64,000 bases of DNA from Andalucia godoyi And28 (lineage: Eukaryota > Protista > Jakobida). The notes under the pieces were generated by a model. That model worked only from the letters and a program-made list of their open reading frames with translations, did not search any database and was not told the DNA's origin. Location of the stretch: positions 197,695 to 261,694 of the forward strand of contig VRVR01000019.1 of NCBI GenBank assembly GCA_009859145.1. Reading direction: 5' to 3'. Positions 16,721 through 56,245 of the stretch are shown piece by piece; the first letter of the stretch is position 1, and every line of letters starts with the position of its first letter. The position numbers were made by a program, and so were the translations under genes.

Positions 16721-17827
16721 TTACTTTCGAGAAGATGAGCAGGTGTCCTTGGCGGTGATCGCTGAGCTGAAGGCCTGCCACAGCGTGGCATCCTTGATGC
16801 AAACGGTTCCGCCCCCGCGGTTTGCCTGAGACGTCATGTGGTTAATATCTCCGATGCATGTGATTCCCTTGGCGGAACCCTGGGAAACTGCCCATTTTGC
16901 ATGGTCCTGAGTTTCCTTGAATGAGTCAGAGCCGAGCTGCACTTCCTGGACATTGACGACTGCATACTTGCAAGACGATCCGCAGCACGACGGTTCGTAC
17001 GGTCTCATCCACGTCTCGACGTACAACGGGGTAGTGAAGTACGGTGCAACAAGATCTTCGTACAACATCTGGGCCCACTGTTTGTTCTTCGCAAACGAGA
17101 TGAACTGTGTTCCGCTAGTTCCTTCAATGATCTGCACATGCGATCCAGCCTGCGAGATCGACTGTCCAGCAATCACTTGCGCGGTATTCGGAAGCGTGGA
17201 TGCGAGAGAGGACGGCATGTTCGAGTCATAGACCTGCGGCTGGTTGTACAGCAATTGCTGTCCAACATCGTCCAAACTGGAAGCAGAGACTGAAATGCAC
17301 AGATACGTTTGACCATAGTCAACTTCGTCGGCCGGGAATGTAAAAGATGATGCCTCGGACGGACCCTGAGGGAAGCGAGGAGTCGACTGGACAAGCCAGA
17401 ATCCACCTGACGCCGAAAACGCAAACACTCCCTTTGTGTGTCCCTTTGAAGAAGACACCTTGCCATCCGGCGTCTCATCGTTGTAGAAGACCCATCCGGT
17501 GCCTGAGGGCTTCTTGTAGACCACATTAAGAGTCGTCGCAAGTGCCGAGTCTGCGTCGGTCAGCACATGCGAGGACATCCGCAGCGATGACGAAGACGAT
17601 CTTGAATCCGTGTACGCATAGTCAAATCCCTCGGAGCCCACAGAAGATCCGTGGTGAGTTCCGGACGTCACGTTGAACACTCCCTTTGACGAGCTGCGAG
17701 GGAGCTTGTACATGATCCACCACTCAACAGAAGACCCGGAGTCGCTGATGCACCCAAGACTCGACGCCTGGACCGCCGCAAAGCAACAAGAAACGCTCAG
17801 AACAAGCAACAATAACATGCCGCTCAT
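16721..17827 (-). CDS. DNASE2: Deoxyribonuclease II (secreted/lysosomal)
   Basis: Signal peptide, VEWWIMYKLP, GHTKGV, GFWLVQSTPRFP, DHAKWAV and CIGDINHMTSQANRGGGTVC. Confidence 0.92.
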   Translation of the reverse strand: MSGMLLLLVLSVSCCFAAVQASSLGCISDSGSSVEWWIMYKLPRSSSKGVFNVTSGTHHGSSVGSEGFDYAYTDSRSSSSSLRMSSHVLTDADSALATTLNVVYKKPSGTGWVFYNDETPDGKVSSSKGHTKGVFAFSASGGFWLVQSTPRFPQGPSEASSFTFPADEVDYGQTYLCISVSASSLDDVGQQLLYNQPQVYDSNMPSSLASTLPNTAQVIAGQSISQAGSHVQIIEGTSGTQFISFAKNKQWAQMLYEDLVAPYFTTPLYVETWMRPYEPSCCGSSCKYAVVNVQEVQLGSDSFKETQDHAKWAVSQGSAKGITCIGDINHMTSQANRGGGTVCIKDATLWQAFSSAITAKDTCSSSRK

Positions 17828-17942
17828 GATAATAGCCCTAGTGCAATCGCCCTGAATATTTCCAATCCAAATTCTTTTCTAATTGAAGAAGAAAAAAAGG
17901 ACTTTGTTAAATAACAAGAATGTGAAACGAATATATCGGATA

Positions 17943-18735
17943 GGGCACACCCATTCAAATCAATGCAGGGATTCCCAGGAACGAGAGGCGTGAAATGCCC
18001 GGCAGAACCAGACATTTTCAATCTTCATGAGTGCCTCACGCGAGGACTCCAGCTCGCTTGCACTGGGAATACCGCGTGGATTCCGACACAAGAACCGCGG
18101 TCAGATGGACAGTTCTCTGTGGCGCAGTGTCTCAACCCCCCGGGGCACGAAGCGCTCACGACGCAACACCAGTTTCTCGCGCATCCGCATGCGCACCCTC
18201 TTCGGGTGTTGGTGGAACCGAAAAAAGGGTGCCACCTGGTCGCGGGTAGCCAGACGGTCCAGCAGCTTGACCGTCGCCTGCTGCTTCTTGACACGACTGC
18301 GGAATCGGCGGCTGTTATGTCACGAGTGCGCCGCGCCACGTGATGAACGGCAAATCGTTCATCCAGATCGGGATGGCGCAGCCGCTCTCGGAGTGCAGCT
18401 TTCACCACCTGCACCATTGGGTTCTGAAAATGTGCAAGTATGAAACCGACAACGTGTGGCGAAGTGTGAGGAGGATGTGGTGCCAAATAAAAACGGTGAA
18501 ACATCAAAATACGAACGCAGCAGTGTTTTATGCAATATTTTATTTGACACAACGAAGTCCAAGGTGAAACGGGAGAAAGGAAAAAGGAAAAAGGGAATGG
18601 GTTCAACAAACAAAATCCAAGGGACGAGAGACAGCGGATAACAGACAAAAGGGAAAAGGAAACGAGAGAGAAACGGAAAGGGGAGCGGCTTAGGAATTGC
18701 TGGAATTTCTGAATTGAATTTTGGGGAAGCGCCCT
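17943..18735 (-). mobile_element. Family A copy 1: non-autonomous Fanzor1-like element, internally deleted
   Basis: Inverted near-duplicate of 47269-48249. Flanked by TA at 17941-42 and 18736-37, with imperfect terminal inverted repeats. Carries fragments MVQVVKAALRERLRHPDL (ATG 18417), RRFRSRVKKQQATVKLLDRL and GLRHCATENCPSDR. Confidence 0.75.
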
Positions 18736-19344
18736 TACTATTTATTATTATTATTATTATTATTTGGCGAAGGCAGCAAGCATAGCTTCTGGTGCACGAA
18801 ATTGATCGCATTATTTTCAGGCTACGATCTTTTAAAGGTATATCATGATGTATTACCTGTGTTTATTTTGTAGAAGACTCATTTGTTCTATTGCCACTTC
18901 TGTTTTCCTTTTTTTTGTCCGAGTTGCAACATTGATGATGCATCGTCAGCGAAAGGCTCTGGAGAGCTCGCAAGCCTATATTTTTTTTACCGGAGTTCTC
19001 GCTCCACCTCGCAAAGACGACATCAGGGCACAGGACTGACATAGCAACAGAAAATGATGCAGAGCTGCAAGTGCATGTGACTTCAACAGGGAAAAACTCG
19101 TCAATGTTTCCTCGTCGTAAACAGCAGTCTCGCAAAACGGAATGATGTCTGCAAACCTTGGCTGCACAAACTCGGACACAGTGTAGTGTGCGATCCTTTC
19201 CGATGGGATCGGGGGATGGCAGCGCAGGTCTTCTAATCCGCGCACGTTGATATCAGCGTGTCCAGCACGGCGCACGTATCGCTTGAGGAATATGAAATTG
19301 GGATAGACCAGCGCCCAGAATACCAGTATTTGCGCGCTTTTTTC

Positions 19345-20250
19345 TCAGCATCTTTGCAAAGGCGTCGCATCGCCAACATTGTCGTCATCGTCATCGAGAA
19401 GTGCTTGCCTATTTCGCTTTCTATTGAGTGCATTCTCTACCGAAGACGACGTGTTCTCTTCCACAACCCGTCTTCTTTTGGCTGCCGTAGCATCAGAATC
19501 ATCTTGCGCCTCCGTCGACTGTTGCGAGCTGTTAAAGCCAGCAGGAGCACCAAGCCTGCATGAAAAATGCTTGACACTGTCCGCTGGTCGACCTTTAAAT
19601 GACGGCGACAGCGTGACGTCCCTGTTTGCCGGTCGAGGTGCCGGAGAAGCAGTTGGAGACCCCTTATCCTCCGGGACGTACTGTGTTTTTGGTTTCTTGG
19701 ACGGATTTCCAAGCCTTTGCATCGGCCGAATTGGAGCCAATGATCCGTGAATTGAAGCTTCGATCTTCTTTTGCTGCTCCACAAACCGAGTCCATTCCTC
19801 TTCAGTCATGTCATCCTGAACAGGTGCAATATCCTCGTACACATCCTCATCCTCGTCCTCGTCCTCGTCCTCATCATCATCATCACCACCACCATTCATC
19901 CTCCCACCTTCTTCCGTCGACGCACCCTCGTCTTCACAAGATTCATACTCTCTGAGTGCGGCGTCCCCGCGACTGCCGTGTTTTCCATCCTTCTCTGGAC
20001 CTCGATTCCCTCGGTGTCTCTGCTCGTGAGCAATGCTTTTGTGCATCGACAGCTTGAGCCCTGCAATGCGATCCGGGTCGTTTTCTGTTCCCCGCACATC
20101 TTCCATAAGATTACCAGACATGTACCGGTCAATGGTGTTCTCAAGAGACCCAAACGTCAGCAGATGCGCTTTGAGCCACGGTATCGCCCCAGGAATAAAG
20201 TTCGGGAACATCGCTACAAACAACTGCATCTGCTCATCAATTTGGCTCAT
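19345..20250 (-). CDS. CUE-like ubiquitin-binding domain protein; the frame continues 123 codons past a single TGA to 18976
   Basis: N-terminal QLFVAMFPNF...SLENTIDRYM helical motif, then acidic and disordered sequence. TGA at 19347-19345 is followed by an open frame ending at TAG 18976. Confidence 0.6.
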   Translation of the reverse strand: MSQIDEQMQLFVAMFPNFIPGAIPWLKAHLLTFGSLENTIDRYMSGNLMEDVRGTENDPDRIAGLKLSMHKSIAHEQRHRGNRGPEKDGKHGSRGDAALREYESCEDEGASTEEGGRMNGGGDDDDEDEDEDEDEDVYEDIAPVQDDMTEEEWTRFVEQQKKIEASIHGSLAPIRPMQRLGNPSKKPKTQYVPEDKGSPTASPAPRPANRDVTLSPSFKGRPADSVKHFSCRLGAPAGFNSSQQSTEAQDDSDATAAKRRRVVEENTSSSVENALNRKRNRQALLDDDDDNVGDATPLQRC

Positions 20251-20625
20251 CGCTGCTGCAAGAGGAGATCAACCTAGAACCTCGAATTTGCGCGAATTCT
20301 TTTTTTTTATTATAAATATAAATATAAATATAAAACCAAATGAAGAAAAAAAGCACATGATAAATATACGAAAAGTCGTCGTTCAGAACCCAAAAAATAA
20401 AATTTGCAGTACGGTTGACAGTCTAGTGTGCATTGAACATCAAACAAACAATATCATGTGCTGGAAGTTTGTCGATCTGTCTAGAATTTCTTCATTCTTC
20501 ACGTTTCTCCCAAATAAGAGCAAAGCATGTGGCTTGGATCTGTCTTCGGTAACAGCTTAGCCGATGACCAATAATGATCCATGACTTGGCGAGCGGATTC
20601 CGGAGCAGTCCTTCCAGTTTATTTG

Positions 20626-20829
20626 ATTAACATCCCTGCAAAGAATCCGGAGGGGCCGTTGTAGGTCTCACGCCCCATCTTTCGCGGGCGCCCTACGCGA
20701 GAGTCCAACTCGCTTGCGCCAGGAATACCTGACAAGGTGTGGTATGGCGACGTAGTGCCAAATAAAACTGTTAAATATCAAAATATGAACAGCAGTGTTT
20801 TAATTAATGTTTTCTTCTGACACAACGAA
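20626..20829 (-). mobile_element. Family A copy 3: diverged ORF-less mini (ghost) element
   Basis: 20731-20829 aligns to the 5' subterminal region of A1/A2 (gtgccaaataaaa..tcaaaata.gaac..agcagtgtttta...tgacacaacgaa). 20687-20729 and 20626-20648 align to the A 3' region (ggtattcc..cgcaagcgag.tgga..ctcgcgt; gga.tc..tgca..gat.t.aat). Confidence 0.7.
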
Positions 20830-20831
20830 CG

Positions 20832-21375
20832 CCTACATTATCCACTGAACATGCATATCAACGAGTAGACATGCATATTCAATCTTGCATCCCGTTGCTC
20901 GGAAGGGGAAAGGCCCCAACACGCCTCACGGTGTTCTTCAGATAGATGTTCCGCGCTCCGTTCTCAATCTCGATCAATCTGCGAGCCACTTTTCTCAGCG
21001 TGACACGTTGTTCCTGAGAAAGGTGCATTTTGATTCCGACGGCCCTAGCAGCAGGCGCTTTCGTGTCCTCAGTTGCAGCGCGGTTGATGCACCTGGAGAT
21101 ACGAGAAGAAGAGGCGGTAGGAAGACGGTGGGGGTTTGCGGCTGCGACACTTCTCGCTTCACGTGCTGCTTTCCCAACGCTGCATGGGCTCCCGCATTGT
21201 TCGACGCAGAGTGCCTGAACATGTGCTGCACACGTGGTCATCGTTTCTCAGTTCGTATATCCATCCCCGATGCGGACCGTCGGTTCTTGTCCCAATTGCA
21301 GACATTCGAGAAACCGTTCAGCGCCCTGGATTTGGGCGCCAACACCCAAAAAGAAGAAGAAGTCGGGAGCCCACC
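20832..21375 (-). mobile_element. Family B copy 1: non-autonomous Fanzor2/IS607-TnpB-like element
   Basis: 20830-21148 is an inverted duplicate of 51905-52203. Encodes RAVGIKMHLSQEQRVTLRK (OrfB_IS605 HTH/WED start) joined to IDRD/ENGARNIYLKN (RuvC-III). GG occurs at both proposed junctions on the minus strand. Confidence 0.75.
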
Positions 21376-21571
21376 AAGTGAGTTTTACAGAAAGGGGGGG
21401 GGGGGGCATGGGTCTGTGAGACACGACATACCGAACCAGTATGCAAAGTAAAAGGCGAGGATGACAGAAACAATCCAAGGATCCATGATAAAATAAAAGC
21501 ACATAGAAGAAGAAGCCAAGGGGAGGATCACGACATTAACAACAACAGCAACAGTGGCAGGGGCAGCGACT

Positions 21572-22786
21572 CTATCCTTCTGGCTCCTCTGTTTCGAAAT
21601 GAGGATGCTGATGGAGATGCGTTCGAACATCATCTGGAACGGCAGCTCCTGATGCGTCCTTTTCGTGAATCACCTGCAACATTCTCTTACCGCTCATCTG
21701 AGTGGTGAGTTCCCTCCCAAACACAGAAGCATGAACCACGGCCACGGACCGATCGACATTTGTGTTGTCCACGAGTCCCCAAGGCCGAGTGCAGTTCTTG
21801 GACCGCAGGCACAGTTCGGTTTGAATTCTTCGAATTGCATCAATGTGTGCAACATACCTGTTCATTCTCGGTTCCAGAGTCATGTATTTTGCTCTCGTCG
21901 CAAATCTTTCTCGATGCTTCTCTGCATTGGATATGTGAACCACAAACGGCACGACAAAATCAGCCTCCATTTCAGCGGGGATCATCTCCTGAAGGACATT
22001 CGGCAGCAAGTGCACTCCTTCTACAATGATTGGTGTCCGTCGCTTGACGTGGCTCTGAATAAGTGGCACAAGAGCCTGGAGCACCATTCTGCACTGGTCC
22101 TCATAATCCTGGACATTCGACTCATATGTCGATGCAAACAGATGCTGCGGTGCATTTGGAATCGAGCGCAATGCGTGACGAATCACATCGGTTGAGATAA
22201 TCGTCGTGATTCCAATTCGAGCAGCCAACAACGCAGCCAGCGTCGACTTTCCACACCCGGACGTCCCACCAAGTAGAATCACGATGGGACGTCTCCGAGC
22301 TTGAATTTCCACTGCCAGCTCTATGTCTCTCATGGGATAAAACAAGCTGTGAGCAGAGAGTGTTGCGGCAATCAATCTGCATAGCAGGGCTGCCCTTTCC
22401 CGACTCCTATTCTCCCGCTCTTCTCCACTCTCGGCACCGCCGTCGACATCCCCCTTTGAGGAAGACTCTCTTCGGTGGCGATGGTGGTGGTGGTCATTAT
22501 GATGATTCTGATCGGTGCCGTTTGCACTGATGCTTGCATAGGAGGAACCAGCGGAGTTGGAGTACGACGCCGTACAGTGGAACGAGTCATGGTCTTGCGA
22601 GTCGTAATCTTCAGGAACAACATCCACAGGAAATGCATCCACCATCGTCTCTGCTCGGTGAGGCTTCACACCAATCAATGCAAATATCTGGCGAATTGCA
22701 AACGGATGAACACCCATTCTTCTCCCTTCTTTTCTTCTCTTTTCGCTCAGCAAACGTAAGTCGCTGCTGAACACTAGCCCGAGCAC
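21572..22786 (-). CDS. 2-phosphoglycerate-kinase-like P-loop NTPase (LPA1 homolog)
   Basis: ILLGGTSGCGKSTLAALLAARIGITTIISTDVIRHALR, IIVEGVHL, HRERFATRAKYMTLEP and VDNTNVDRSVA. Confidence 0.85.
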   Translation of the reverse strand: MLGLVFSSDLRLLSEKRRKEGRRMGVHPFAIRQIFALIGVKPHRAETMVDAFPVDVVPEDYDSQDHDSFHCTASYSNSAGSSYASISANGTDQNHHNDHHHHRHRRESSSKGDVDGGAESGEERENRSRERAALLCRLIAATLSAHSLFYPMRDIELAVEIQARRRPIVILLGGTSGCGKSTLAALLAARIGITTIISTDVIRHALRSIPNAPQHLFASTYESNVQDYEDQCRMVLQALVPLIQSHVKRRTPIIVEGVHLLPNVLQEMIPAEMEADFVVPFVVHISNAEKHRERFATRAKYMTLEPRMNRYVAHIDAIRRIQTELCLRSKNCTRPWGLVDNTNVDRSVAVVHASVFGRELTTQMSGKRMLQVIHEKDASGAAVPDDVRTHLHQHPHFETEEPEG

Positions 22787-45660: not shown

Positions 45661-45791
45661 ATCACGACTTGTGTTTTTGAGCGCGGAGGTCGTTTGGTTG
45701 GGATGCGGTGGAATGTTAAATTGGTGTCGATACGAGCCATTGGTTGACTACTCGGGTTTGTAATATGGCCGTGGGTCTGGGTTTTTTGTGG

Positions 45792-45793
<2 letters not shown>

Positions 45794-45859
<66 letters not shown>
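45794..45859. repeat. (TG)n microsatellite
   Basis: Seen directly. Confidence 0.95.
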
Positions 45860-45860
<1 letters not shown>

Positions 45861-46117
45861 GTGTTTGTTTTTGTTTTCATTGGTGGAGGTCCTTTTTTTA
45901 ATTATTATGTTCGTTCTTGCATTCGTTCCGCGCGTGTCTGCTGGTCTCCATCCTTTTCCCTTTTAAGGTTCAAAAAGAGAAGAGAACGATGACAGTCTCG
46001 AAAATACAAAATAAAAATAAATACTAATCAGAGAAAAACGAAAAAACGAAAAAAAAGAATCAATGAAATTGGAATTGGAGACGGGCATGCAAGATGCGCA
46101 GGTTTGCCAGAATTTAC

Positions 46118-46960: not shown

Positions 46961-47018
46961 ATTTCTTTCTTTTCTTCTTCTTCTTTCTTTTTGTTGAAGA
47001 GACGAACGAAACGCACAG

Positions 47019-47053
<35 letters not shown>

Positions 47054-47268
47054 GAAGCAGTCTTTCTGAAGAAGCAAAAAGAAAAGAAAGAAAGAGAGAC
47101 AGAGACAGAGAGACAGAGAAACACAAGTCAAGCAAGTAAAGATAAAGGATGAATGCTTAAATGGATAAGAATGGTGATTAAAACAAGCATTTGAGGCTAT
47201 TTGGGCTCTGCGAAGAGGCCTGACAAAGTGACGGGTTCGCGCTCGCCTTTTGGGAGTGTTTTACCGTA

Positions 47269-48249
47269 CGAGCGTTTCCATAAAATTCAATTCAGAAATT
47301 CCAGCAATTCCTAAGCCGCTCCCGTTTCCGTTTCTCTCTTTTCCTTTTCTCTTTTCCCTTTTCCCTTTTTCCCTTTCTCCCGTTTCACCTTGGACTTCGT
47401 TGTGTCAAACAAAATATTGAATAAAACACTGCTGCGTTCGTATTTTTGATGTTTCACCGTTTTTATATGGCACCACATCCTCCTCACACTTCGCCACACG
47501 TTGTCGGTTTGTCTGTTCCGTCGGTTTCATACTTGCACATTTGCGGAGCCCGATGGTGCAGGTGGTGAAAGCTGCGCTCCGAGAGCGGCTGCGCCATCCC
47601 GATCTGCACGATACCCTCCTGAGTTGGGTGAACGATTTGTCGTTCATCACGTGGCGCGGCGCACTCCTGCTAAACCACTACCTCGCCCTTGTGTTGGAGA
47701 ATGACCTGCCCTTTCCCGATTTCAAGGATTCGTTCTGTTGTAGCTGTCGCAGTGTTGTCGATAAAAATGTCGACAACGACACGGACTTGTCCGTTTATGT
47801 GTAACCGACGGTTTGTTTCTTTTATTCTTTTGTTCGTAAAATAAATCAGATAGGTTTTATTATTTTAGGTGACATAACAGCCGCCGATTCCGCAGTCGTG
47901 TCAAGAAGCAGCAGGCGACGGTCAAGCTGCTGGACCGTCTGGCTACCCGCGACCAGGTGGCACCCTTTTTTCGGTTCCACCAACACCCGAAGAGGGTGCG
48001 CATGCGGATGCCCGAGAATCTGGTGTTGCGTCGTGAGCGCTTCGTGCCCCGGGGGGTTGAGACACTGCGCCACAGTGAACTGTCCATCTGACCGCGGCTC
48101 TTGTGTCGGAATCCACGCGGTATTCCCAGTGCAAGCGAGCTGGAGTCCTCGCGTGAGGCACTCATGAAGATTGAAAATGTCTGGTTCTGCCGGGCATTTC
48201 ACGCCTCTCGTTCCTGGGAATCCCTGCATTGATTTGAATGGGTGTGACC
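47269..48249 (+). mobile_element. Family A copy 2: non-autonomous Fanzor1-like element
   Basis: TA flanks at 47267-68 and 48250-51. Fragments: MVQVVKAALRERLRHPDLHDTLLSWVNDLSFITWRGALLLNHYLALVLENDLPFPDF (47553-), HNSRRFRSRVKKQQATVKLLDRL (47873-47941) and LRHCATVNCPSDR (48057-48095). Confidence 0.8.
48130..48249 (+). ncRNA. Putative omega-RNA scaffold of the family A element (equivalent region 17943-18065 in A1)
   Basis: Position between the last nuclease motif and the right end; hairpins GCGAG..CTCGC and TGAAAATGTCTGG-ttctg-CCGGGCATTTCA, enclosed by GAGGC/GCCTC. The boundaries are inferred. Confidence 0.5.
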
Positions 48250-48623
48250 TAAGAGAACGGCGGGAAAAACTACGACAGGTTCATTGCGGTGTCGTTTATT
48301 TAGCCCTAATGTATTCATGTATGTACATCGATATGCATATAAGAATCGATTAATCCGTTGGCAACTCTTTTCCGTTACTTTCAGTTTTTTGTTTTTCCTT
48401 TTGTTTTTCCTTTTTGTGTTTTCTGCTCGTTCGTCGTTACTGCCCCCATAGCTATTTTCCTACACTCTCACACGCATTCAGGACAGAGCACGTGGGCTTT
48501 GTTGTGGATTTTTCTGCGGTGCTGTCTTATTATAGCTATTGTTGCAGAATTTGTGTTTCCGAGCGTTTTTTTCAGCAAGAGCGACAAGAAGGATCTTTTT
48601 TGGTGGCTGTTGAGAGAATTACA

Positions 48624-49568
48624 ATGAAAACGCATATCAAAGGCATTCAAGCACGTCGTCGCGACTTTCTGCAATTCAGTGCAGTTACTCCGGCATTCAG
48701 CAAAGACGACGGGCTTGATGATGTCCTGGGTCGTCTTTCTTCGATTGACCGGAAGCTTCGTTCAACGACTCGAGAGCTTGATGTCGAACACATCCCTTCT
48801 GCATTGACTCCGCAGAGGACTCTTGATACGTGGAACTCTCGTTCTCCTGCTCGGCGGTCCCCTTCTCCCCATGGCCATTCTCTCTTGAGTTCATCCCTGT
48901 CATCATCATCATCAACAGCAACAGCGACAGCGACAGCAATAGCCGCATCTTCGTCTTATTCGTCTGGTAAGATGGAGAACAGGTCGTCGTCGTCGTCTTC
49001 TGCAACATCAATGTCGCGAACAGCATCAGACGCAAGCACGCCATCCAGCCAACGACAGGCAGGCCCGCTGATCCGGTCGTCGCCGTTGCTTGCGAACCAG
49101 TCTGGAACACTCCAGGCGGACGTGCAATTCTACACTTTCGATGTGGATGTGGACGAACATGCACTGGTGCATCTGGACATTGAAAGACTGGACCCGTGGT
49201 TCGAAAGCGACACGACGGCATACATTGATCATTCGGGCCTTCTAATCAACGGCATCGCAGACCAGTACCTTGACTTGCGGACAAAGTGCAAGCAAAAAGG
49301 GAAGGTGGAAGTTGAGATCCCTCAAATATCATGCGATTTTGAGAAAAAGATCCTAAAGTTCAAAAAGGGCGCACATGCATTCGCAGTCATGCGGGACTTC
49401 AAGCAACGATCCATTCCTGTCCTCGTCGAACAGTCGCTGGTCACTGAATACACGATGCGATTTCTCAGCAGTGAATCTCAGTCAGTCACCACACGACGAA
49501 CAATGTCTGTTCTCGCGATGGAACAGCGCAGGGCACGACTCGCTGTCAGTCCAAAGCCGCAGCCGTGA
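48624..49568 (+). CDS. Hypothetical protein with a possible degenerate ParB/Srx-like C-terminal domain
   Basis: ATG 48624, a Ser-rich middle, and a globular C-terminus with KFKKGAHAFAVMRDFKQRSIPVLV. Confidence 0.55.
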   Translation: MKTHIKGIQARRRDFLQFSAVTPAFSKDDGLDDVLGRLSSIDRKLRSTTRELDVEHIPSALTPQRTLDTWNSRSPARRSPSPHGHSLLSSSLSSSSSTATATATAIAASSSYSSGKMENRSSSSSSATSMSRTASDASTPSSQRQAGPLIRSSPLLANQSGTLQADVQFYTFDVDVDEHALVHLDIERLDPWFESDTTAYIDHSGLLINGIADQYLDLRTKCKQKGKVEVEIPQISCDFEKKILKFKKGAHAFAVMRDFKQRSIPVLVEQSLVTEYTMRFLSSESQSVTTRRTMSVLAMEQRRARLAVSPKPQP

Positions 49569-49661: not shown

Positions 49662-49776
<115 letters not shown>

Positions 49777-49958
49777 TCTCTCTATCCCACATTGCATACA
49801 AATCTGCAAATCTAGCTCGCCTTCCTTTGCTCCTCCTCCTTCTCCTCTGATGAATCTTTATGAACTAAATAAATATCATGTTGTTTTTCGTATTTGTAGC
49901 CATTCCCTCTTTTGAGAAGAGCACGAAGCTCATTTGAAACGCAAGCCTCTGCCATATC

Positions 49959-50746: not shown

Positions 50747-51409
50747 TCAATGTGGTGGATTCGTGGATGTTGTTGTGGTTGAGATACGACAGATGTCTCG
50801 CTTCACGGGACGACGACAGCTTGTCGAACGGGGGATGAGGACATCAGTAATGGTGCCCGTGTCGATGGCGTCGGTGGTCTCTGTTTGCATCTCCCGGATC
50901 TCTTGTGTGGTAAATGCGTAGATGGGAGCATCTTTGCGAAGATAGAGTGGGTGCTTGGGAGTTCCGACCATGGTGTAGCCAAAGCAAAATACCTTTTGTA
51001 AGCAGCCTATCCGTTTCAGCATTTCCTCGACTTGCCTCCCACGCTCCAGGAACACCCCGTGGTTTCCCCACGCAACAAGAATTCGATGCGCCTCAACGCA
51101 GTGCGATGCAATGTACGTGTCGTTTTGGGGGCCAACGGGATCGGTAACCGTCCGTAGACCTTTTGGATTGGTGGACCGCAATGCAAAGATGTTAACAGCA
51201 ATCATTGCTCCGCATCCCCATGTGCGTGCCAAGTCAATGGAGCGCCGGATCGTGGGGTCATCTTGAGTTTCGTCCGCCGTGCTGGGGTTCAGCATGATGA
51301 ACACAGCCTGCGGTTTGCTATCATCCCAAATCCTGTAAAGCACATATCGATACTTTTTCGAATCGTCAAACACCGCCTTTGAAACTCGGATATCTTTCTG
51401 CAGCAACAT
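50747..51409 (-). CDS. DUF1643-family protein (prokaryote/phage-type)
   Basis: KYRYVLYRIWD, FIMLNPSTADETQDDPTIRR, VNIFALRSTNPKGL, DPVGPQND, LVAWGNHG and GTPKHPLY. Confidence 0.9.
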   Translation of the reverse strand: MLLQKDIRVSKAVFDDSKKYRYVLYRIWDDSKPQAVFIMLNPSTADETQDDPTIRRSIDLARTWGCGAMIAVNIFALRSTNPKGLRTVTDPVGPQNDTYIASHCVEAHRILVAWGNHGVFLERGRQVEEMLKRIGCLQKVFCFGYTMVGTPKHPLYLRKDAPIYAFTTQEIREMQTETTDAIDTGTITDVLIPRSTSCRRPVKRDICRISTTTTSTNPPH

Positions 51410-51423
51410 GTGTGTGGGTGTGT

Positions 51424-51460
<37 letters not shown>

Positions 51461-51863
51461 TGTGTGGGTGGGTGTGGGTCAGCGCGTCGTTCGGTTTATG
51501 AAAATGATAACAACAACGGTAAATCAGTGTCACGGAGAAAATGATGATTTGGCTGTGTACGTACGGCGTGGCGGATTGCAAACCGCCCGATTACCGCGCC
51601 AGAGAACAGGAAAGCGTCCGGTCCGACTTCCCGGAGCAACCGTTGAACAATAGCACGTCATTGTCATGCATACGGAAGTACACATAAACAGACGCGACCT
51701 GTGACACAGGCTCCGCATTTTCGACGCTCTTCAAGGCAACATCCGTAGCCATCTATTCTATCATTCGTTCAGTGCACTGCCAAGAGGCGAACTTCCAAGA
51801 CACGATCTCCAATCCCAGCACGCAGGGTAGCCAACCCCAAGCAGAAGCCTCAGGGACCGTCTC

Positions 51864-52203
51864 TTGCAGAACTCGTGGTTTTCTGCTGCGATGCACCAGG
51901 CGCAGTCGCAGCCGCAAACCCCCACCGTCTTCCTACCGCCTCTTCTTCTCGTATCTCCAGGTGCATCAACCGCGCTACAACTGAGGACACGAAAGCGCCT
52001 GCTGCTAGGGCCGTCAGAATCAAAATGCACCCTTCTCAGGAACAACGTGCCACGCTGAGAAAGTGGCTCACCGATTGATCGAGATTGGGAACGGAGCGCG
52101 GAACATCTATCTGAAGAACGCCGTGAGGCATGTTGGGGCCTATCCCCTTCGCGGCAACGGGATGCAAGATTGAATATGCATGTCCAGTGTATAATGTAGG
52201 CGT
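51864..52203 (+). mobile_element. Family B copy 2: non-autonomous Fanzor2/IS607-TnpB-like element (left end unresolved)
   Basis: QNSWFS (51867-84), AVRIKMHPSQEQRATLRKWL (52010-69), IDRD (52074-85) and NGARNIYLKN (52090-119), then a conserved 3' region ending aatgtaGGcg. Confidence 0.78.
52120..52202 (+). ncRNA. Putative omega-RNA scaffold of the family B element (equivalent region 20830-20932 in B1)
   Basis: Conserved in both copies after the RuvC-III motif; hairpins GGGG-ccta/tt-CCCC and ATGCA-agattgaata-TGCAT. The boundaries are inferred. Confidence 0.5.
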
Positions 52204-52284
52204 GAGCGTCTTCTATTTACATAATTTAAAAGAGGAAAATGCCTGCACGGGTACCGTGCTGTTCCAAAAAAGAAGGATCTCTTC

Positions 52285-55813: not shown

Positions 55814-55922
55814 ATAAAGAGAGAAGAAAAAACGGAAAGCGGAAAAAAGAAAGGGGTGAAAAAACAGAGTGAGGTGGGAGAGAGTATCTCGCAACAAGGA
55901 AATGGGGAAAAGGGGTAGAGAG

Positions 55923-55924
<2 letters not shown>

Positions 55925-55989
<65 letters not shown>

Positions 55990-56245
55990 GAAAGAAGGAA
56001 GGAAGGAAGGAAGGAAGGAGAAGAGGAGAAAAGAAAAGAGAAGAAAGGAAAGGAAAGAAAAGAAAAGAAAAGAAAAGAAGAGGGGAAAGGGGGGGAAAAG
56101 AGAGAAGAAGAGAAGAAAGGAGAGTTGTAGAAAATGATCGGGAGAGGATCAAGAACTAAACAAGCAAAAGAGGAAGGGAAAAAGGGAAAAAAGAGAAAAA
56201 AGAGAAAAAAGAGAAAAAAGAGAAGGAAGAAAAAGTGAGAAAAGA
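55925..56245. repeat. Polypurine tract: (GA)n, (GAAG)n, (AAAAG)n and (AAAAAGAGA)n, upstream of PTBP
   Basis: About 320 bp almost purely purine on the + strand. Confidence 0.9.

Follow-up and report, generated by a model that had tools for sequence, protein, structure and literature searches.

Two decayed elements in the genome of the jakobid Andalucia godoyi as probable relics of a Fanzor1-type transposon

The 64,000-nucleotide (nt) stretch of Andalucia godoyi And28 analyzed here (assembly GCA_009859145.1, contig VRVR01000019.1, positions 197,695 to 261,694; hereafter the window) is characterized by high gene density, almost no introns and many microsatellites, and five of its ORF products are identical to EukProt entries. 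Between two of its genes lies a short element, A2, whose sole self-BLAST partner within the window is a sister copy, A1, found ~29 kb (29.5 kb) away on the same contig in inverted orientation. Both are considered here in relation to transposons that encode Fanzor1-type, TnpB-like RNA-guided nucleases, and their anatomy is as follows.

47269-48249, plus strand: element A2, bounded by TA on both sides
17943-18735, minus strand: element A1 (793 bp), sister of A2, between TA at 18736-18737 and TA at 17941-17942
47267..47268, plus strand: TA flanking A2 on the left, either a duplicated target site or the outermost base pair of the terminus, read directly
47269..47310, plus strand: left end of A2, an imperfect terminal inverted repeat (TIR) of ~40 nt, from end-anchored and local alignment
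47311..47552, plus strand: 5' non-coding region, presumed promoter and 5' untranslated region, with a CT-rich low-complexity tract at ~47325-47390 and then a conserved ~100-nt block at 47396-47496
47553..47735, plus strand: first 61 codons of a Fanzor1-like open reading frame (ORF; MVQVVK...FKDSF), from phmmer, alignments and a profile
47736..47868, plus strand: filler of 133 nt that matches nothing; A1 carries neither the filler nor the equivalent of 47670-47735
~48210-48249, plus strand: right inverted repeat of A2, at the close of a 3' terminal module
48250..48251, plus strand: TA at the right end of A2, the same TA as at the A1 ends

The inverted repeats begin just inside the TA, where the left end aligns with the reverse-complemented right end over ~40 nt at ~65-70% identity, and the end-anchored score of this pairing was equalled in 23/5000 shuffles for A2 and in 20/5000 for A1 (p ~0.004-0.005). 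Both left flanks read GTA. Past the TA the flanks of the two copies are unrelated (AGAGAACGGCGG... at A2 versus TCCGATATATTC... at A1), just as the first-pass annotation of this DNA had described, and we found no further colinear similarity between the two neighbourhoods. A segmental duplication with shared flanks was looked for and not found, and lacking shared flanks or colinear neighbourhoods, A1 and A2 are not products of one. The filler of A2 contains a palindrome with perfect 8-bp arms (GTTGTCGA...TCGACAAC, 47754-47777) and showed no similarity to any Fanzor relative. It terminates in an AT-rich tract resembling a splice acceptor (ttttag/GT), and the A1 deletion ends precisely there. An intron within 47670-47868 with this end was considered and rejected, since no splice combination gives a reading frame and the upstream 'exon' has no match of any kind.

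The identity of the 61-codon fragment was addressed by an exhaustive phmmer search against 1.84 billion cluster representatives, among which there were five matches, all of them at protein N-termini.

P0006, the annotated A. godoyi protein ANDGO_07022: 185 aa, 95% identity over residues 1-61, E=4.8e-31
P0007: 687 aa, 43% identity, E=9.6e-5
P0008: 598 aa, 38% identity, E=2.5e-4
P0009: 113 aa, 41% identity, E=7.0e-4
P0010: 174 aa, 60% identity, E=8.6e-4

A profile of P0007 and P0008, built without any A. godoyi sequence, found the A2 fragment at E=3.9e-13 in six-frame translations of the window and nothing else there. The same profile matched Spizellomyces punctatus Fanzor1 (SpuFz1, 8gkh) at E=3.8e-10, in an alignment that pairs VDPGR with the RuvC-I Asp, VDEF[RN][ST]T..C..C with the RuvC-II Glu and first zinc knuckle, GL..C....C with the second zinc knuckle and SRD.NAA.NI with the RuvC-III Asp. 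A six-sequence profile of the family matched Parasitella Fz1 (9cf0) at E=7.9e-7, and P0008 alone reached PF07282 with a score short of the gathering cutoff (E=1.4e-4); TnpB, Fanzor2 and Cas12 chains gave no match at E<=1 in the PDB profile searches. The RuvC D/E/D residues and a C4 zinc finger are present in both full-length relatives, P0007 and P0008. In P0007 the Fanzor/TnpB motif of Bao & Jurka 2013, D-X(125,275)-[TS][TS]-X-X-C4 zinc finger-X(5,50)-RD, is complete, running from D406 (VDPGR) through 165 residues to S572-T573, C576/C579 and C617/C622 and, after 9 residues, to R632-D633. A tentative placement with Fanzor1, as opposed to Fanzor2 or IS607 TnpB, is suggested by significant PDB matches to Fanzor1 only, protein lengths of 598-687 aa and the TIR/TA architecture. 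Sequence comparison shows the start of the A2 ORF to be the N-terminus of a Fanzor1-like family, and the pattern by which the first-pass annotation had recognized Fanzor1 is essentially the one that the family conserves (VVK..L...WV..S...RG.LLLN.YL...LEN.LP.PD); the comparison of the 61-aa fragment with a Fanzor profile that it had proposed is the P0007 and P0008 search given above.

Other routes to the family returned little. The 61-aa fragment produced no candidate in a word-indexed search of 5.8 billion proteins, in which P0007 and the six-sequence alignment as queries retrieved P0007 itself as the sole return, and scans of IMG/VR and of JGI metagenomes turned up no relatives of the protein family. 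A single-sequence AlphaFold model of P0007 was too poor for use (mean predicted local distance difference test score 38.7).

Homology of the A2 ORF to its Fanzor relatives stops directly after FKDSF, at codon 61. ANDGO_07022, a third genomic copy, has a homologous N-terminus of ~150 residues and continues with LMNAFTFPDG... after FKDSF, where A2 diverges, which places a deletion breakpoint in A2 right after codon 61. The proposal that A2 keeps the longest N-terminal fragment of the nuclease therefore holds within the window, where A1 retains ~38 codons (18321-18417) broken by a 20-nt deletion and a frameshift, and where a smaller derivative, relic C (20599-20829), has no N-terminal fragment, but fails genome-wide, where ANDGO_07022 is longer.

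Downstream of the filler, the A2 sequence resumes as a block of decayed coding remnants colinear with the C-terminal part of the relatives.

47885..47956, plus strand: coding remnant 1, RFRSRVKKQQATVKLLDRLATRDQ, matching P0007 residues 500-524 (helix before RuvC-II); score 42, reached in 1/500 shuffles
47957..48055, plus strand: coding remnant 2, VAPFFRFHQHPKRVRMRMPENLVLRRERFVPRG, matching P0007 residues 583-613 (loop inside the zinc finger); score 50, 1/500 shuffles
48048..48083, plus strand: coding remnant 3, PGGLRHCATVNC, read in the +1 frame and matching P0007 residues 610-622; score 56, 0/500 shuffles
48092..48232, plus strand: C-terminal tail frame, PRLLCRNPRG...SLH, closed by a stop codon (48230-48232) that lies 17 nt short of the element end

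The third remnant is the second half of the C4 zinc finger (PGGLRHCATVNC versus PHGLRHCKTANC of P0007), and its motif aligns to HGLLGCTNPNC of SpuFz1. PRLLCRNP at the head of the tail frame (48092-48115) resembles PSYLCRNP near the end of P0008, a similarity that was equalled in 15/500 shuffles and is weak alone, but is colinear with the other remnants. Between these pieces much of the nuclease is missing: everything from codon 61 to residue ~500, including the RuvC-I Asp; P0007 residues 525-582, which carry the RuvC-II Glu and the first CxxC and are deleted between remnants 1 and 2; and the ~25 residues with RuvC-III 'SRD.NAA.NI' that would be expected ahead of the tail frame. A frameshift separates remnants 2 and 3 at a C4G6 run (48047-48056), and the same run occurs in A1 (18136-18145); given the 454-based assembly, this particular lesion could be a sequencing artefact common to both copies. 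The complete catalytic and zinc-finger motif is thus absent from both A2 and A1, with GLRHCATVNC, the second zinc-finger half, as its sole survivor. Having lost all three RuvC motifs and half of the zinc finger, neither copy can make a nuclease, and both are, as judged from their coding content, relics of the Fanzor family and not functional members of it. A 207-aa ORF that spans A1 (18025-18648, minus strand) is a deletion artefact in which the N-terminal codons are joined out of frame to the 3' block, and is not a gene.

The internal deletions and the frameshift of the 3' block are common to A1 and A2. That the same derived lesions occur at unrelated, TA-bounded sites indicates that an ancestor already crippled was copied to a second site after the damage had occurred, and comparison of the two copies in this way shows mobilisation after deletion. 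The first-pass annotation had gone further and called the mobilisation of deleted copies recent, from a near-identity of the last ~380 bp judged by eye. The near-identity itself is real, with 98.7% identity, 5 substitutions and no indels over the 383 nt that align 47869-48251 with 18323-17941, but the 5' part (47266-47669) is only 93.6% identical in aligned columns and contains 6 indel events, so that 'recent' can be used in a relative sense only. Divergence declines from left to right, from ~10% at the left end to 5.2% in 47400-47552, 3.2% in the N-terminal codons and ~1.2-1.3% in the 3' block. Three of the substitutions between A1 and A2 fall in the coding remnants (remnant 2 and the overlap with remnant 3) and all of them change the amino acid (P/R, N/K and S/R in the frame of remnants 1 and 2), which fits neutral decay.

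Two copies do not separate three possible causes of this gradient: the CT-rich 5' part, prone to slippage, may decay faster, the 3' module may be under constraint, or the 3' half may have undergone gene conversion. In its strongest form, the last of these would hold that A1 and A2 are old inverted copies 29.5 kb apart, long dead, whose 383 nt of 3' near-identity reflects recent homogenization by chance. The drop in divergence from 5' to 3', the confinement of all 6 indel events to the 5' half, and the arrangement of the copies as inverted repeats on one contig are what such conversion would predict. We consider it unlikely as the explanation, given that the 5' half consists largely of CT-rich sequence prone to slippage, that the deletions shared in the decayed coding 3' block point to one crippled ancestor however the copies were homogenized later, and that conversion leaves unexplained why relic C retained the same 3' module, with compensatory changes.

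This module, the part of the element that persists in all three sequences, is where a guide RNA would be expected if the elements behaved as Fanzor1 loci do elsewhere.

48117..48249, plus strand: 3' terminal module of ~135 nt, a proposed omegaRNA-like scaffold kept in A1, A2 and relic C and ending in the right inverted repeat
20599..20829, minus strand: relic C, an older and smaller derivative in which the 3' module (from the equivalent of 48119 onward to the end) follows directly on a 5' block (equivalent to 47396-47496)
48252..48267, plus strand: AGAGAACGGCGGGAAA, the flank that would supply a putative guide if the 3' module were an omegaRNA, by analogy with SpuFz1 (PMC10432273)

Relic C is ~77% identical to the A elements and consists of a ~100 nt 5' block (47396-47496 aligned to 20829-20730, 77% identity) and ~130 nt of the 3' end, with no coding remnant and no left end. 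The intergenic region around it (20250-21572) is unusually long and apparently made up of repeat debris. RNAalifold on A1, A2 and relic C predicted 37 pairs arranged as a closing stem, an extended hairpin and a second hairpin, and 9/37 of these pairs are compensatory in relic C (for example AGUGC/GCACU to GGCGC/GCGCC), a number reached in 0/500 shuffles and compared with 0-3 in slid controls. The fold is more stable in the sense than in the antisense orientation (-35.7 versus -27.5 kcal/mol), and several G-U pairs can form on the sense strand only. Since the compensatory changes keep a multi-stem fold, they suggest an omegaRNA scaffold, and we tentatively propose, at a confidence only slightly short of even, that the last ~135 nt represent such a scaffold overlapping the former end of the ORF and the right repeat.

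Several results count against this part of the interpretation. The fold is no more stable than that of shuffled sequence (z = -0.9 and -1.2), the covariation amounts to one independent comparison (A versus C) with the structure derived from those same sequences, and the helix richest in compensatory pairs falls in a poorly aligned stretch. Rfam gave no match, whether the whole window was scanned at gathering thresholds or the element at E<=1, and a covariance model of the 3' module matched nothing downstream of P0007 or P0008, recovering only its three training copies (relic C at 111.7 bits, by construction). The pattern of the module was likewise not found in IMG/VR.

An unremarkable fold energy and the lack of a match in Rfam or in distant relatives are what would be seen if the ends had been kept only as cis-acting sites for a transposase, through the inverted repeats and subterminal sequence, with no RNA gene in the 3' module and no guides in the flanks; non-autonomous deletion derivatives of any TIR transposon (miniature inverted-repeat transposable elements) retain both ends. 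We regard this as a serious possibility, while still placing it somewhat below an even chance. Relic C kept ~130 nt of the 3' end yet lost its left end, unlike what selection for transposase sites would leave, and cis-sites alone would account neither for 9 compensatory pairs nor for G-U pairs confined to the sense strand. Moreover, the omegaRNA of the structurally solved homologue is located exactly there (PMC10432273): in SpuFz1 it spans the right inverted repeat and extends a guide of 14-15 nt into the flank.

If the 3' module were an omegaRNA, A1 and A2 would carry different potential guides, as the first-pass annotation had supposed. Their flank sequences do differ, but the search for targets in IMG/VR remained at chance level and the window holds no intact nuclease that could use them. 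The flank 16-mers match 22 and 38 IMG/VR contigs, with extensions that are chance-like (mostly 16-17 nt, maximum 19) and not preceded by TA above expectation, and there is no sign of viral targets for the flank guides. By analogy with homing systems, each flank would match its own empty site.

Taken as a whole, we consider it very likely that A2 and A1 are non-autonomous copies, with internal deletions and a frameshift, of a small TIR/TA transposon whose only gene encoded a Fanzor1-type RNA-guided nuclease, with the architecture of SPu-1. The identity of the element is the part we hold with the highest confidence, whereas we regard present-day activity of the copies as improbable. SPu-1 has 33-bp TIRs, with TA as the putative target-site duplication (PMC3627910), and S. 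punctatus also contains partial Fz copies and ORF-less 'ghost' loci in which the repeats and an omegaRNA-like 3' region persist (PMC10432273). The likeness to SPu-1 and SpuFz1 lies in a single-gene Fanzor1 element (~2 kb in SPu-1), terminal inverted repeats of ~30 nt and TA flanks, and A1 and A2 correspond to the 'partial Fz' and 'ghost' loci. In contrast, the host here is a jakobid (Discoba) and there a chytrid fungus; the N-terminal region of A2 has no detectable similarity to SpuFz1; the inverted repeats of A1 and A2 are far more degenerate, and no intact copy was seen here; and the proposed RNA module of ~135 nt overlaps the tail of the former ORF, whereas the SpuFz1 scaffold is 75 nt. A1 and A2 are, on this comparison, a decayed SPu-1-type Fanzor1 element of a kind of remnant already known from the chytrid, and what is new is the host lineage and a sparse N-terminal subfamily. 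No paper that names Fanzor together with Andalucia or jakobids was found in the literature searched. The second close comparison is Parasitella parasitica Fanzor1 (PDB 9cf0-9cf3), the sole significant PDB match of the six-sequence profile, with an alignment spanning REC-like helices, DPG, DEFRTS-CxxC, GL.C...C and RD; the similarity is at profile level only, and profile positions 1-77, the region of the 61-aa fragment, lie outside the aligned stretch.

In bacterial IS200/IS605 elements, TnpB follows the obligate mobile element-guided activity (OMEGA) logic of a 3' terminal omegaRNA with the flank as guide, homing into the empty site, and non-autonomous copies that depend on proteins in trans (background cited in PMC10432273). 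These elements lack both inverted repeats and a target duplication, and move as single strands via the TnpA Y1 transposase. By analogy, the same logic may be proposed for A1 and A2, which in contrast possess inverted repeats and TA flanks and have no TnpB structure match at E<=1.

Other observations weigh against the overall interpretation. Considered alone, the 61-aa fragment had no Pfam, PHROGs or PDB match, the solved SpuFz1 included, and the inverted repeats are matched at only ~65-70%. The TA, though present at all four ends, is a putative target duplication whose proof needs an empty site. A 5' half that is 6.4% diverged and carries indels is a poor fit to a very recent burst. Neither an intact Fanzor nor a transposase occurs in the window, and no intact Fanzor with this N-terminus was found among the annotated A. 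godoyi proteins searched.

The surroundings of the relatives give some indication of where such proteins reside. P0008 (326-2122) lies on a compact 7.8-kb (7780 bp) Logan contig from SRR28423930 with a G+C content of 46%, tightly packed with genes for a YqaJ-like viral recombinase, DUF5764 and an AAA ATPase, and because of this gene content the contig appears viral-like, which suggests a large DNA virus infecting a microbial eukaryote, possibly giant-virus-like. P0007 is on a 4.7-kb Logan contig (SRR12487036, G+C content 54%), adjoining a SPRY-domain gene. A 27-nt imperfect inverted repeat (240-266 / 2137-2163) flanks the P0008 ORF on the SRR28423930 contig; inverted repeats around the P0007 and P0008 ORFs were tried as element ends and rejected as short and unconvincing. 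P0010 derives from an 802-bp ENA metagenome contig, ERZ27245784, whose DNA is 69% identical to the start of the A2 ORF and has an in-frame stop after ~25 codons; the stop makes P0010 a pseudogene, another decayed member of the same Fanzor1 subfamily, in an uncultured related organism.

How the copies moved and whether they retain any role can be framed as a sequence of conditional steps. Copying would have occurred in trans, by a transposase recognizing the inverted repeats, for which a Tc1/mariner-like DDE enzyme is the likely candidate because of the TA flanks. Read-through from the 3' module into the flank could then give each copy its own guide of 14-20 nt. If an intact Fanzor1 were expressed elsewhere in the genome, the copies might borrow that nuclease to cut their own empty sites, which homology-directed repair would restore, a role that has been proposed for the 'ghost' Spu-1 loci (PMC10432273). 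Subtelomeric scaffolds with transposon or viral-like sequence were omitted from the A. godoyi assembly (PMC7050145), and an intact Fanzor1 copy would most plausibly hide there. We therefore raise, as a quite improbable scenario, the possibility that the crippled copies are guide-RNA 'hitch-hikers', expressing a locus-specific omegaRNA and using the Fanzor1 of an intact copy in the unassembled subtelomeric repeats, so that the empty allele is cut and repaired. If true, this would account for the conservation of the 3' module (1.3% versus 6.4% divergence, and the compensatory changes of relic C) amid decay elsewhere, and Jakobida would for the first time have a documented, active RNA-guided nuclease system.

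The genes next to the elements raise a different alternative, in which the copies have been co-opted as promoters or 5' regulatory modules of downstream genes. The 3' end of A1 lies 113 bp upstream of a co-oriented DNase II-like ORF (16721-17827, minus strand; start 17827), and that of A2 ~375 bp upstream of a co-oriented ORF starting at 48625 on the plus strand. With two cases only, both would be co-oriented by chance with a probability of ~0.25, and in a compact genome insertions survive only between genes; we find co-option very improbable.

Two further features of the window deserve mention. Repeat B (20835-21148, minus strand, and 51905-52205, plus strand) is ~300 bp long and 95% identical between its two inverted copies. 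Its ORF (…IKMHLSQEQRVTLRKVARRLIEIENGARNIYLKNTVRRV…) is decayed, carries a frameshift in B2 and has no match in Pfam, in PHROGs or to the Fanzor profile. The B1 copy has a 19-bp internal duplication and directly abuts relic C. The lack of a profile match led us to reject repeat B as a Fanzor N-terminus, and an A-type left end following B2 was rejected for want of significant DNA similarity. Long microsatellites of (GT)n/(CA)n and (GA)n occupy many intergenic regions (45787-45865, 46996-47051, 49662-49781, 51409-51470 and 55917-55995), one of them ~220 bp upstream of the left end of A2.

Beyond the lineage and the subfamily, the elements described here are an ordinary transposon relic. Their Fanzor1 subfamily is thinly sampled, with five proteins in 1.84 billion sharing the N-terminus and one of the two full-length members on a virus-like contig, and with them Jakobida, a deep-branching protist lineage represented by Andalucia godoyi, joins the hosts of Fanzor1 elements. 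The pattern of decay, in which the catalytic motifs are lost and the 3' module is kept and covarying, may help to define the omegaRNA of this subfamily, and is consistent with the persistence of ORF-less copies via guide RNA, an idea already raised for the 'ghost' loci of Spizellomyces.

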